Shown: positions 5,737 through 11,700 of the stretch, piece by piece
How positions within the stretch are numbered: position 1 is the first letter of the stretch
How the letters are laid out: each line of letters starts with the position of its first letter
NCBI RefSeq assembly: GCF_000315625.1
Contig: NW_005434636.1
Span: forward strand, 331,298-395,297
Length of the DNA: 64,000 bases
Direction: 5' to 3'
DNA from: Guillardia theta CCMP2712
Taxonomy: Eukaryota > Protista > Cryptophyta
Made by a program: the position numbers and the translations under genes
The notes under the pieces: generated by a model
Databases searched by the model: none
Seen by the model: only the letters and a program-made list of their open reading frames with translations
Told to the model about the DNA's origin: nothing

Positions 5737-8700
5737 TCAGCTCACTGATGAATTGAATTCCTCCGATTCTTGTCCCGATTGATTGATTTCATTGCTGCTC
5801 TGTTCGACTTCCTCCTTGTCTTCCTTCTGTTTCTGCCCTTGGCTTTCTGCACCCTCCTTCTCCTTGCCTTCCTGGTTCTGTACGTACTCGTCTTGCTCCT
5901 CCTTTTCAATCTTCTCCTCCTCAGCTTCTTGTTTCCTCTCTTTGACCTCGACCTCATCGTTCAGATGCTTCTGCGATTTACCTTGCAAGGTCGCTCCTCG
6001 CAGAAAGTCTCTGATCACCAGCGCATGCTTGATCTCCTGAATCTCGAGGATCCGAGCTTTCCTTGCGTCCCGCAGCTTCTGGGGGATGATAGAAGGCATC
6101 CTCCACAAGGCGATGGTGAACATCAAGTCCTCCCACGAGACTGGAGGTACATGTCAGGACCTGCTCACAATGGATATCCGAGCAGACAATGTTACCCGCG
6201 TTTTGGAATTCTTCTGTCTTCTTCCACGCGAAGTTGAAGTCGAACTGCTTGAGGGCAGCGACGTCAGGGTTGAGGGCACCAGAGGATTGGGGGGTGATGT
6301 AAGAGATGAAACTGTTCTTGCCCTTGTTCCCCTTGCTCGAGTTTCTCTCCCGCATGATCAAGTGAAGTTCCGCGCGGATGAACTTGAGGTAAGTTCGGTT
6401 CATCCTCTGATTCGTCTGCCTCCTAGCAGACAGACTAGCAAACCCCATCGGAACAGGTAGATCACGCATGAAGGGCTCGAGACAGTTGACTGGCAGCCGT
6501 CCCGTCCCCTTATCATACCTGCGAAAGATGTCTGCGTAGTGCTGGACCTGAGGGAAGGTGATAGTCAAAGGACAGAACAGAAGCAATGAGAGCAGACCTG
6601 ATTGATCCCCTCGCTTTCCTCCACCTCTTCATCAACGTCGGTTGACGCTTCTTGTATGACAAAAGAAAAGTTGTCGAGAATCATTCCAACAAACAGATTG
6701 ATTAGCATCCCTTCGCATATTAGCTTGAAGCAAACGAAGTATATCGCCGTTCCAGTCTTGTAAAATCCACAGTCACCAAAACTGTAGTTCTTTCCGCTGT
6801 AGCCAACGATATAATCTGAGCTGAACTGATAAGTACAGAAAGGTGGCAGAATACTGAGATCCTCCAGCATCTCCTGCCATTCATCTCCAGTCAAAATCTG
6901 CAGACTGGTGACAAACGAGGAGCCGAGAGTGTCGAAGTTAGCCGTTGGGCCGATCCTGACTCCACTGCGTGTGAGGCCGAAGAGCTGTACTGCTACAGCA
7001 GCGAAGATGATGTAGATGAGAAAGAGCATTGAGATGACGTTGATGAATTGAGGTAGACATAGGAGAAAAGTTTCGAGAATCACTCGTACCGGTCGAATCT
7101 GATTGAGCAGTCGAAAAACTCGAACAAGCCGCAATCCTTTGAGAAATTGCAGGTATGACGCCGTGTTGCCTGACAGTAGCATAAAGGAGGTCAGGACTAT
7201 GCCCAAGTCAAAGATTCGCCATCGGTCGATGAAGAATCCTTTCAACCCATACGCGAGAAAGTTCATGGCAACTTCAATCCCTAGCAGAATGTAGGTACAA
7301 ATATTCTGCCAGTAGATCATCTTGCTCAAAAGATCGCTAGCATCCGAATGGTCCGCTAGCATAAACCCGACATTGACAGCAATGAAGAATAGCGATGTTG
7401 CCTTAAAGGTTTGAGTTTCAACAATCTTACGGATCTTCACCGTAGATTTTGGGTACTTGTGGGCAGTGACTTTCGGCTTGTAGAGTTGAACTCTTAGAAT
7501 AAAGTTGTAGAGGTCTTTTTCCGCAGATGATGTTCCCTTGTTGACAGTGAAAGCATCTACAATGAAGCCAATCATTAGGTTCCAGATAAAGAAAGACCCG
7601 ATAGCTATGTATATCACGAAAAAAAATGCATTTTCAGAGTGCGCATCCTGCAAAGGACTTGTATCCACAGTTGTAACATCCATTGCACTTTGCATGACGG
7701 AGACATACTTGATTGTTGTGACTTTGAACAAAGTCAAAGCTGAAGTCCAAAAGTTGTCAAAATTGTGCCGCTGGTTAGTCCATGAGCTAGCGTACAGTAT
7801 CCTGTTATTGCTGTTAACGAAAGTTCCACTGCAGCTCGCTTTCCCTAGCGGGTAACTCACACTCGGATCCGAGCAGCTGAAAAATTTTCCACCAAACAAA
7901 CCCATAGCAACTATTCCAAAGGCTGAGATTATGAAGCCCAAGAAAAAGAAGATGTAACAGAGAGGCACCAGTGACAGAACAAGTGCATTAATCGTGTTTC
8001 TCATACCCCTGTTCTGCTTCATGACTCTCAGAGGCCTCAACGCTCTTACAAGCCTCAAAATCTTTGCATTTGAAAGCGACTGGAATTTCACTAAATTTTG
8101 GAGCCAGGAGACGCAGAGTACAACAAAGTCCAAGACATTCCAAGGGGATCGGAGATAGGCTCCCTCTGAGAAAATGAAACCAACATTCATGATCCTGATA
8201 AAGCTCTCTACCGAAAAAATGATGTTGAATATCAAATCTGTGATACGGGAAATCGAAGGGCTAATGAGATACGGATAGTTTGGAATATCATCATATGGAG
8301 CTAGAGTGAATAAAAACACGCAACTGCAGATTATGCAAACCAAAACAAACCCTTCGAAGATTTCCGATTCACCAATCCGTATGAAAATCCGGCGAAATAG
8401 CATTGACTTAGGAAAGATGAAACAGGCGTAGTCAGCGTAAAGCCTTTTTCCTTCGTCATCTTCGACCATAGACCCTTCTACTGTGCTCGAGTTAGACTGA
8501 TACAGCACAAGCTTCGACGACAAGCCTCGCTGAACTGCCACCTCAAAAGCTGATATTTTCGTAGAATCCTTTCCAAAACTTTGATCCTCCTGCAAAGATT
8601 CCTGTTTCGAAGTTCCTGGAAAAGAGTCAATCATACACTCAACAAACCCTCATCATTTGTACCGTCACCTGCTGGCATGTCTCCAACCAAACTCACAGTC

Positions 8701-11700
8701 GGTAACTTCTCTTCCACCTGTGAATCGCTTTCTACAATCGAACTAGGCTGAATGACCTCTTCTGGTCGCACGCGAGATCTGTCGCTGTCATGTGGCAGAA
8801 CTGGAAATCTCTTTCGAGCTTTCCTCAAGTTCGAGAAAGTCTTCGCAAACATAGATCTGAGAGACTGAATAGCTTGCGATGCCTCTTCATTTTCTTTCTT
8901 GAAAGTGACATCGAAGGTGAAGTTTTGAATGATGATGGCCACCAACAGATTGATAAGCAGAATCTGCGAAAGAGTCAACGCACTTGGGCTTACGTAATCA
9001 ACAATCACCTGACAGAAAAAAAGTACAAAATAGACAAAGAATGCTGCTGAGAGCTGCCCAACGAATGTTTCTTTTACATGAATCGCGCTGTAAAGTATTC
9101 TGGACCAAGAGTCACCGGCAGTGAGCTGGAAGATGGTCAGGAAGGCATAACCAACGCTGGAGAAGTTCGAACGGGATATCGCGTCCAAAGTGTCTCCAAA
9201 AAGGAACCTTCCAATCGTTGCAAACGAGATCATCCAAACCAAGCAGAACACTGCAAGATTCAAAAATGATCCGAGACTGTTGACAGAAGTTGATAACAGG
9301 CCCTTAAGCAATGGAAAGTGTCTGCATAGTCGAAAAATCCTGAACGACTGCGAGAATTTGAAGAAATCTCCTGTAGAAGGAGATAACCCAGTGAATCCGA
9401 GAAGAAGCAGTAAGAGATCAATTCGAGCTCTCCATAAAAACCTTAAAAAGCTTCTGCATTCGATGAAAAACAACCAAGCATCGACTGTGTACACGAATAT
9501 ACAAACCACAATGATTGCAAAATAAATACTAGAATGAGATGCAGAGGCTTCGTACGTATCCAATCCGAGGATGATGACATGTGCAATGACAACCAACGAC
9601 AGAAAATGCTGATATATTGCATTAGTTCGCACAGCTTTTGCAGCCTCGAGTAGAAGCTTTTCATCATAATTCATTTGAGCATTTATAGATGGATGAAATG
9701 CCAAGTTTTCGAATTCATTGTAGACACCAGAATAACTTTTGATTCTACAGACAACTGGTCAGTAAATATGCAATCAAATAAATATCTTCACCGTTCATTA
9801 TCCGGCAAACTCAATGGAAGTCTGTTCGAAGCGTCTTCAATGATAATGGATGGCTGAATACGTCGGAATGTCTCTGTCACAATACCCACGAAGAATCCCA
9901 AATCCATCCAGTGGCATAAAATAAGGATAAAAGGATAAAACAAAAATGTAATGAACCATACTTGATACTGGCTTTGATAGGAAAACCAAAGGACATCATA
10001 TGCATTGTCAGGAAATATCCACTGCGATATCGCAAGAACGGCTCCGAAAAAGTGATCAAAGTGCATCAGACCGAAGTAACCAAACTGCAAAACATTTGGA
10101 GGTGTCAATCATCTTTACAATCACACAGGCAATCACTTACATCCTCAACATTTCCTACTGTCTCGCACATTTGAGTGACTGCGGCTTGACCTTGCTGTAA
10201 GAAAAGACTCATTTGACAGGTGTGATATCTGCCTTTGTGATCTAGAGGATATTGTCCATCATACTGTCCGGGCGTTGAGTTCTGTAAAATATCGCACATC
10301 TTGAAAAACTGATATCCTCCGGTAACGCTCACATTCCAAGGTTCCACACTAAAGCCATAACTGGAAACTAAAGGAGCTTGGCATGCAGGACTCCAGCTTT
10401 GAGTTGAAACAGCTGTACATGCAAAGTTTTCGATGAGAACTTGTACACACCTGTTAAATCATAACGTCAAAAGAAACAGTCAAAGCTTTGAAAATGTAAA
10501 AACCTCCTTCGGAAAGCAGATTGGTATACTGATACTCCAAATATGGCAAAAGTAAAGACAAAGCAGACAAGAATCAGAAGTGCACTCCACATTTGGCTCA
10601 ACCCAACATCAAGTGTCAAAACCATCCATTTCAGCTTTTCGAATGAGTTCATCACTCGTAGCAGCCTAAAAACCCTCAAAAAGCGAAATGAAGCAAAAGA
10701 TATGCCTGTTATACTGTCGACACATCAAAACGTTTCTGAAAAAAAATTAAGTTTACCTGAAGAGCGACAGGATGATATCCACCACACCAGCAACCAAAAC
10801 GAGAAAATCGATTGTGTGGAACTTGGACTTTCTAAGATAATAATGTGCATCATTGAAGCACCCCATAGCGATGCAGCCAACCAAAATTTCAATTCCGAGG
10901 AAACCGAAAAGAATAATGTTCAGCAAGTTGAATCTCGCCAACCAGTTGTATCGAACATCATAGGTCCTTGCATCCATATTATGAGACCCTGCATGATCTG
11001 TAGATAGAAATGCAATTGCTGATGCCCCCAGTCCATGCAAAACAGCGAGAAAAAAGTGAAAAGTTACCCAATACTTGTTATCAAAAACTTTCAGACAAAA
11101 CATTCGGAAGCGACTTTCCTTAGGAAATCCAGGAAAGCGTATGTCCCAGAAGCTGAGTGAAAAACTGGATGAGGCTATTCCTTCAAATTTTTGATAAGGA
11201 TCTGTCGACAAAGGGAAGGTTTTTTCTGGATTTGCATCAGGAGCTTGACGCAGGGAGTTCCCCCTAAAACTTGTCGTATTTTTCGCCTCTTCTTCGCTCG
11301 ATTTGCTCAGACTACGTTTTAATGTTGCATGCGACTTTGTTTCCAGATCAGCCAAATCTATGATCTCCAAATCAGCATCGACTCTTAGTTTCTCACGAGA
11401 TACAGGTCCCACTGCATTCTGTTCCAGTTGACGGTTTTCTTTTTCTTCAACTTCGTCAGCCTCGTCAGATTTTGCGACAGGATTGTTCTCCGATAGGTTT
11501 ATGTTAGGAGCCTGAGCACCTTCGAGCATGGTTGCCCTGATAGATCTAGAAGACTGTTGCCCTGTTAGTGCTTGATGAGGGCGCGGAGTCGACCCCTTGA
11601 AAACGCCTCCTGATCTCTATCATAAGCATACGGGAACGAACAAGCACAGCTATTACCGTTAGAAGGTTGTACAGAGTTCATACCTTCAAGGGCCTTTTGC

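Follow-up and report, generated by a model that had tools for sequence, protein, structure and literature searches.

A predicted four-domain channel gene of Guillardia theta with a D/D/K/D selectivity ring: a further paralog of a known cryptophyte family with candidate Na+ permeability

A stretch of 64,000 nucleotides (nt) from the cryptophyte Guillardia theta CCMP2712 (NCBI RefSeq assembly GCF_000315625.1, contig NW_005434636.1, positions 331,298 to 395,297 of the forward strand; hereafter the window, whose numbering is used throughout) carries on its minus strand, from approximately 11529 to 5737, a predicted gene for a four-domain cation channel. Its four pore loops appear to contribute Asp, Asp, Lys and Asp to the selectivity ring (D/D/K/D), and an earlier note on this DNA had therefore suggested an independently evolved, voltage-sensing, non-fast-inactivating channel, either Na+-preferring or non-selective. 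The locus thus raises the question whether the four residues really occupy the filter position and, if so, which ions the channel would conduct and whether it is new.

All four codons were found where they had been reported, on the minus strand: GAC (Asp) at 10007-10009 in domain I (DI; context ISQWIFPDNAYDVLW), GAC (Asp) at 9111-9113 in DII (IFQLTAGDSWSRILY), AAG (Lys) at 7708-7710 in DIII (LFKVTTIKYVSVMQS) and GAT (Asp) at 6883-6885 in DIV (SLQILTGDEWQEMLE). The four pore loops were aligned with those of Cav, NALCN and Cch1, as the earlier note had proposed, and the ring residues fell in the filter columns. In HMMER alignments, the DIII Lys is paired with the filter Glu of domain III in Cav2.1, Cav2.2 and Cav2.3, and the DII Asp with the DII Glu of Cav3. 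In a MAFFT alignment with Cav2.3, insect NALCN and fungal Cch1, D, D, K and D are all found in filter columns, the Lys of NALCN sharing its column with the DIII Lys of the window gene. Another reference sequence, P0245 (labeled Nav1.4-like), showed an odd alignment of its pore loops and was disregarded. Searching PDB with the DI pore exon alone gave chance-level matches only; DI was placed by alignment with members of its clade and by a model of a paralog on G. theta contig C4. Here, FPDNAYD of the window gene aligns without gaps to APDSSYD of the C4 paralog and to TMEGWTD of Cav.

Structural models were examined for the same positions. The exon encoding DIII and DIV was modeled using AlphaFold2 with a 73-sequence alignment (predicted local distance difference test, pLDDT, 85; predicted template modeling score, pTM, 0.81). 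In the model, the first pore helix (P1) of DIII spans residues 295-306, followed by the loop T-I-K-Y (307-310) and the second pore helix (P2; 311-318), and DIV shows P1 at 570-581, the loop T-G-D-E and P2 at 586-593. Lys309 and Asp584 each precede P2 by two residues and thus take the same structural position. In the window gene, DI extends over four exons; DI and DII were modeled on the intronless C4 paralog (AlphaFold2, pLDDT 84). P1 and P2 of this paralog were predicted at 317-328 and 333-343 in DI and at 624-636 and 640-650 in DII, with Asp331 (A-P-D-S) and Asp638 (G-D-S) again two residues before P2. The arrangement of P1 helix, filter loop and P2 helix is, therefore, predicted in each domain, for DIII and DIV in the window gene and for DI and DII in the paralog. 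Foldseek with the model of the DIII-DIV exon retrieved Cav, Nav and NALCN chains at template modeling scores of approximately 0.7. Since alignments and models both put the Lys at the canonical filter position, the structural placement outside the filter that the earlier note had named as speaking against its proposal was not found. At the level of alignment and modeling, the position of all four predicted ring residues is confirmed.

The surroundings of the ring differ from the canonical pattern. The Trp at the second position behind the filter residue is replaced by Ala in DI, and DIII reads Lys-Tyr-Val; the loss of this Trp in both domains had been noticed before and is borne out. The residue directly after the filter residue (n+1) is Ser in DII (TAGDSW) and Glu in DIV (TGDEW), the latter being the sole acidic n+1 residue.

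An exhaustive HMMER comparison with 1.84 billion representatives returned one match of 97% identity, a metagenome relative, and otherwise matches of at most 40% identity. About 20 of the 25 top matches show T-x-K-Y-[VI] in DIII and, where these regions are covered, TGDEW in DIV and TGDSW in DII. Lys in DIII and Asp in DIV were present together in 44 sequences (37 non-identical tree tips). As the Lys is kept in these 44 sequences and also in an environmental contig 96.8% identical to the window, it represents neither chance nor a sequencing error. The earlier note had also counted orthologs without the Lys as evidence against its idea; nearly all clade members keep it, the variants being single tips with Pro, Gln, Asn or His. 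All named members of the clade are cryptophytes, i.e., Hemiselmis rufescens, H. andersenii, Hanusia phi, Teleaulax amphioxeia and Guillardia.

A FastTree phylogeny (LG+G, 162 tips) was calculated from DIII-DIV alone, leaving out sequences which do not span both domains. In this unrooted tree, the D/D/K/D sequences form a clade with a support of 1.00 on a long branch, and insect NALCN, fungal Cch1, Cav and Nav lie outside of it. The midpoint root merely separates the long-branched Lys clade, and the tree is, for this reason, uninformative on whether the clade is nearer to Cav, Nav or NALCN. Within the clade, the window gene and its metagenome twin (P0001) are sister to a paralog on contig C29 together with P0002 (support 0.99), and they share the clade with the C4 paralog (node supports 0.92-1.00). 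Branches leading to the window gene, to P0001 and to the C29/P0002 pair are long (0.57 to 0.80). The proposal of independent evolution stands in one respect: the Lys has its origin outside the Nav and NALCN lineages of animals, insect NALCN being placed outside the Lys clade and NALCN being less similar to the window gene than Cav and Nav.

The environmental contig (L017; ENA ERZ930064, contig k127_127532, 5064 bp) allowed a comparison with a natural relative. It is collinear with window positions 11261-6198 at 96.8% DNA identity and keeps the DIII Lys. Only two indels were observed, each of 1 nt and each inside a predicted intron (at 10116 within intron 10140-10085 and at 6555 within intron 6597-6548). 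Substitutions are 2.3-fold denser in introns (0.067) than in exons (0.029), and exon 6 shows 33 synonymous and 19 non-synonymous changes, 36 of the 52 at third codon positions. Indels confined to introns, the denser intron substitutions and the excess at third positions point to purifying selection on the window gene in nature. It follows from the high identity that G. theta CCMP2712 has a very close relative in the ERZ930064 sample.

The gene itself consists of eight minus-strand open frames between approximately 11616 and 5737; searches and structure models used its single exons or the intronless paralogs. Seven short GT-AG introns of approximately 43-59 nt restore the frame, and the junction peptides match homologs; the resulting model has eight exons and a coding length of approximately 1,790 codons. 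Teleaulax amphioxeia P0152 (2162 amino acids, full length), compared by tblastn, aligns to a single strand across the four domains in their proper order. Pfam detected Ion_trans on the exons of DI, DII and DIII plus DIV, in agreement with four homologous six-transmembrane repeats, and the full-length relatives contain four Ion_trans stretches each. The splicing model relies on GT-AG sites, homology and conservation, by which the exons are taken to form one transcript.

Exon 1 (10757..11529) encodes the N-terminus and S1-S3 of DI, with the first ATG at 11529 as candidate start; it is based on the open frame 11616-10756 and the tblastn comparison with Teleaulax P0152. Its donor GTAAAC at 10756 opens intron 1 (10756-10714) and yields the junction DIILSLF|SITGISF, matching P0152. 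Exon 2 (10504..10713; Ion_trans, 1.3e-06) contains S4 of DI (FRFLRVFRLLRVM, 10650-10688) and the S4-S5/S5 part, and is followed by intron 2 (10503-10451). A Cys-rich extracellular turret of DI is encoded by exon 3 (10141..10450; open frame 10458-10108), which is joined to exon 2 through SAFRR|RCVQ, matching SFRRRCV in Teleaulax. After intron 3 (10140-10085), exon 4 (9792..10084) supplies the DI pore loop (9986-10033) around the filter Asp, as well as S6. Intron 4 (9791-9745) precedes exon 5 (8697..9744; Ion_trans, 3.1e-22), covering DII, with S4 at 9318-9362 and the pore loop at 9090-9137, and most of the II-III linker. Intron 5 is one of several GT-AG choices within 8696-8590 in this linker, leaving the 3′ boundary of exon 5 and the 5′ boundary of exon 6 (8589 to 8637) uncertain. 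Exon 6 (6598..8589) holds DIII and DIV in a single exon (Ion_trans, 1.6e-83, two stretches; open-frame piece of 689 codons), with the DIII S4 at 8008-8064, the DIII pore loop at 7687-7734, the III-IV linker at 7474-7542, the DIV S4 at 7084-7143 and the DIV pore loop at 6862-6909. Beyond intron 6 (6597-6548), exon 7 (6196..6547) forms the proximal C-terminal domain (VQHYADIFRRYDKGTG...) at the place of the EF-hand-like region of Cav and Nav; its junction EGINQ|VQHYADIFRRYDKGTG matches LAQVFMMYDKGTG of Teleaulax, and no Pfam match was obtained for this exon. Intron 7 (6195-6141) leads to exon 8 (5737..6140), which contains a pre-IQ-like string (LMFTIALWRMPS, 6091-6126), an IQ-like string (ILEIQEIKHALVIRDFLRG, 5995-6051), an acidic tail and the stop codon. 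The WR.P motif of this exon is common to the paralogs on contigs C4, C128 and C29, and to the pre-IQ string of a published Guillardia channel, Guillt7. The Cav-specific Pfam families GPHH and Ca_chan_IQ were found neither on the window exons nor on P0152 or the C4 paralog.

Concerning gating, the S4 segments of all four domains are rich in Arg and Lys, as had been stated, and these lie at three-residue spacing: the DI segment is RxxRxxRxxR with four Arg, the DII segment is KxxQxxRxxRxxR, and DIII and DIV hold seven and six Lys/Arg, respectively. Each domain thus has the charged S4 of a voltage sensor. The observation that the III-IV linker aligns with that of Nav but lacks a triad like Ile-Phe-Met (IFM) proved correct. 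Aligned with fish Nav1.4, the linker reads NK-G-TSSAEK opposite PVFMTEEQQ, i.e., the polar KGTS is found at the position of IFMT with no hydrophobic triad, where other protist channels have LLLT, ALLT or TFLT. However, the label 'non-fast-inactivating' does not follow from this. In the coccolithophore channel NaVEh, fast inactivation is reported to be independent of an IFM motif (PMC9114117), making the step from a missing IFM to missing fast inactivation unsafe.

How much of this is new? Pozdnyakov, Matantseva and Skarlato (Sci Rep 2018; PMC5824947) examined a set of 277 four-domain channels that included ten G. theta sequences, and reported D/D/K/D(G) filters for Guillardia (clade WSC VIII) and for oomycetes, likened them to the EEKE filter of NALCN, noted Asp or Glu at DIV n+1 of the Guillardia channels, and proposed these as candidates for Na+ permeability (PMC5824947). 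Their Table S3 lists the inactivation-gate strings xGAS for Guillt6 and AGSS for Guillt7 (PMC5824947). A DDKD ring was also mentioned by Fux et al. in 2018 (PMC6259924). Consequently, the ring is 'unusual', as the earlier note called it, only in comparison with animal channels, since D/D/K/D(G) and a polar gate motif were published in 2018 (PMC5824947), and the literature on G. theta already contains this ring, the absence of an IFM triad and the hypothesis of Na+ permeation. As of 2018, no experimental data existed for these Guillardia channels (PMC5824947), and a search of the later literature gave no recordings from four-domain channels of cryptophytes. No named oomycete sequence was among our homolog matches.

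The window gene has the D/D/K/D(G) ring reported for clade WSC VIII (PMC5824947), it groups with the published Guillardia members in the unrooted DIII-DIV tree, and its gate position (KGTS) is polar and its pre-IQ string (LMFTIALWRMPS) of the ..WR.P.. type when compared with Table S3. It shares species and ring with Guillt6 and Guillt7, as well as the polar gate (xGAS/AGSS), and its ALWRMPS corresponds to the Guillardia pre-IQ string of the ..YWRKP.. type. The strings of Guillt7 match the C4 paralog, and unlike that gene, the window gene falls together with the C29 paralog into a divergent subclade (support 0.99). Its own S4 and pre-IQ strings are absent from Tables S2 and S3 of PMC5824947, so it is probably outside the published set of ten Guillardia sequences. 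The strings of Guillt6, taken from the text of the paper's PDF, had no match in the genes on contigs C38 (the window contig), C29, C104, C4 and C128, a comparison which did not cover C89, C87, C3 and C191; Guillt6 may be one of the latter four, or its strings may be garbled. We conclude that the window gene is a further, divergent and apparently unlisted paralog of a known family. As the idea has been in print for G. theta since 2018, the locus adds one more paralog, and the detail contributed here is the conservation across the clade, the purifying selection and the position that structural models predict for each of the four ring residues.

In comparison with solved structures, the DIII-DIV exon (phmmer against PDB) was most similar to Cav2.3 (9e-95), followed by other Cav channels, Nav1.x (approximately 1e-70) and NALCN (approximately 1e-34). 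The Ion_trans matches on the exons, the ring codons and the cryptophyte clade together uphold a four-domain D/D/K/D channel in an alga. With animal Nav1 (DEKA), the window gene shares the DIII filter Lys, the four-domain voltage-gated architecture and an alignable short III-IV linker. Unlike Nav1, it has the ring D/D/K/D, no IFM triad and a position outside the Nav lineage, i.e., neither the DEKA ring nor the IFM-type latch of Nav1 is present. The high-voltage-activated Cav channels (Cav2) share the fold and provide the best matches among solved structures. However, their EEEE ring and their Asp at DII n+1 are not found in the window gene (D/D/K/D, TAGDSW). Animal NALCN resembles the window gene in having four domains and one Lys among three acidic filter residues, this Lys being in DIII in the EEKE form, as here; DIV n+1 is acidic in both. 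In contrast to NALCN, the window gene has Asp instead of Glu in the ring, charged S4 segments, and Tyr-Val instead of Gly-Trp after the Lys.

By analogy with characterized channels, we consider Na+ permeability or weak selectivity somewhat more probable than not, and it is reasonable to predict a channel that prefers Na+ or does not select. The characterized Lys filters used for this analogy are DEKA/DKEA of Nav and EEKE/EKEE of NALCN (PMC5824947). Depolarization would move the S4 segments and open the pore. The DIII Lys would lower the net charge of the ring and its affinity for Ca2+, weakening high-affinity Ca2+ binding. Monovalent cations (Na+ in seawater) would then pass with weak or no Ca2+ selectivity, perhaps with block by Ca2+, and permeation would resemble that through the Lys-containing EEKE and DEKA filters of NALCN and Nav. 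Inactivation, if any, would be brought about by something other than an IFM latch. The 'beacon' Asp at DII n+1 was linked to Ca2+ selectivity by Spafford and colleagues (PMC10120453, PMC6259924), and the Ser of the window gene at this position fits the Na+ reading, as does an acidic n+1 in DIV only, as in NALCN.

Several points weigh against this reading. Selectivity is deduced solely from Lys-containing filters of animals, and the ring carries Asp where Cav and NALCN carry Glu, with an extra Glu at DIV n+1. By sequence, DIII is without the canonical Gly-Trp after its filter residue and DI without the Trp, so the filter geometry may differ from that of every characterized channel. Further, the long branches (0.57-0.80) indicate that the window/C29 subclade may have diverged in function. 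Finally, joining of the exons builds on GT-AG sites, homology and conservation, and the intron of the II-III linker (8696-8590) is among several choices.

The same data could be read differently. The channel could be mainly Ca2+-permeable or Ca2+-selective and voltage-gated, with Ca2+ bound sufficiently by the three ring Asp together with the Glu at DIV n+1 and acidic residues further out, and the Lys only tuning conductance or block. This fits the Cav2 channels being the closest solved relatives by sequence, Cav2.2 scoring the loci of the Lys clade higher than NALCN does, the conserved acidic DIV n+1 (TGDEW) and the E/E/E/E Ca2+-permeable ancestor inferred by Pozdnyakov et al. (PMC5824947). 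Nevertheless, we regard it as unlikely: all characterized four-domain channels that carry Lys in the filter are selective for, or permeable to, Na+ (PMC5824947), and Ser replaces the DII n+1 'beacon' Asp (TAGDSW; PMC10120453, PMC6259924). The odd pore loops, with no Trp in DI and DIII and a Pro before the DI Asp, could also reflect relaxed constraint in a degenerating or retired paralog or in a non-conducting sensor. The long branch to the window/P0001 pair (0.80), the DI pore exon matching no solved channel by itself and an in-frame TGA in the C104 paralog would agree with such decay. However, all frames are open with clean short introns, the environmental contig indicates purifying selection with indels confined to introns, and the AlphaFold2 models are confident. 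As P-D-x-x-Y-D and K-Y-V are conserved across genera, the odd motifs are features of the clade and not signs of decay, which renders this explanation improbable.

The likeness to EEKE, with one Lys among three acidic ring residues and an acidic DIV n+1, could alternatively point to a cryptophyte counterpart of NALCN/Cch1, i.e., a leak-type, weakly voltage-dependent channel with a Mid1/FAM155-like subunit. Indeed, FAM155/Mid1 homologs and channels near NALCN/Cch1 were reported for Cryptista (PMC12412391), and Pfam Mid1 matches G. theta contigs C93 (36.3 bits) and C5 (28.6 bits). Against this, the four S4 segments are all rich in Arg and Lys, unlike those of NALCN and Cch1, and both of these channels are placed outside the D/D/K/D clade. 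NALCN was also the weakest match among the solved four-domain channels (1e-34). When used as query, NALCN found its best Guillardia locus on contig C55, with an Arg in DIII, and the window gene was ninth. Taking together the better NALCN match on C55, the higher scores of Cav2.2 for the Lys clade, the charged S4 and the placement of NALCN, orthology to NALCN was rejected, and a counterpart of this type is very improbable.

The C55 locus (L009, G000:C55:30797-35668), the G. theta locus most similar to animal NALCN, has Arg in DIII (EIAILRGL) and Asp in DIV, and may correspond to the Guillardia filter with Arg to which Pozdnyakov et al. (2018) refer. The Mid1 matches on C93 (L018, G000:C93:242106-242264) and C5 (L019, G000:C5:576970-577086) are matches to PF12929 at or over the cut-off and fit the 2025 report of FAM155/Mid1 in Cryptista (PMC12412391).

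Six D/D/K/D genes with Lys-Tyr in DIII ('K-Y') were found in G. theta, on contigs C38 (window), C29, C104, C4, C128 and C89. The open frame of the C128 paralog contains the NCBI protein GUITHDRAFT_166006 of G. theta CCMP2712. Intron content varies strongly among the paralogs, since C4 is nearly intronless (1865-codon open frame) and C128 is intronless from the DI S4 onward, whereas seven introns interrupt the window gene and C89 is rich in introns. The C104 paralog (L014, G000:C104:204500-214499; match 206517-208460) has a 2010-codon frame with one in-frame TGA; this stop could lie in a short intron, stem from an assembly error or mark a broken gene, and the sequence was read with X there. In the C4 paralog (L015:840-6329:-), residues 291-315 matched Dockerin_1 weakly (E 5e-4, 20.6 bits, under the cut-off of 22.9) just ahead of the DI pore helix in the AlphaFold2 model of L015:4173-6302, which could be a Ca2+-binding loop or chance. 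Three more four-domain channels of G. theta (L006, G000:C87:111228-115796; L007, G000:C3:16703-21100; L008, G000:C191:83600-87898) are approximately 31% identical to the window exon. Their DIII filter Lys is followed by Trp (..TLKW.., ..MLKW..), DIV has D, D or A, and DII has D where seen. These loci look like a second Lys-bearing subgroup, similar to the metagenome proteins P0134, P0115 and P0058, which branch off at the clade's base.

In G. theta, the D/D/K/D family has the six 'K-Y' genes plus at least three relatives with Lys-Trp in DIII ('K-W'); the family also occurs widely in transcriptomes of cryptophytes and in metagenomes from aquatic samples. For the alga, a role of the channel in depolarization during fast motile or light responses is a matter of speculation. 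A wider proposal, possible but doubtful in our view, is that voltage-gated four-domain channels conducting Na+ were invented independently in this family, outside animals, and make these flagellates electrically excitable by means of Na+, with the window/C29 subclade having diverged in function and Lys-Tyr-Val instead of Glu-Gly-Trp in DIII being a new structural solution to discriminating Na+ from Ca2+. Na+-selective four-domain channels have so far been identified in animals only (PMC5824947), and the conserved filter Lys of this algal channel family is a candidate for their second, independent origin.

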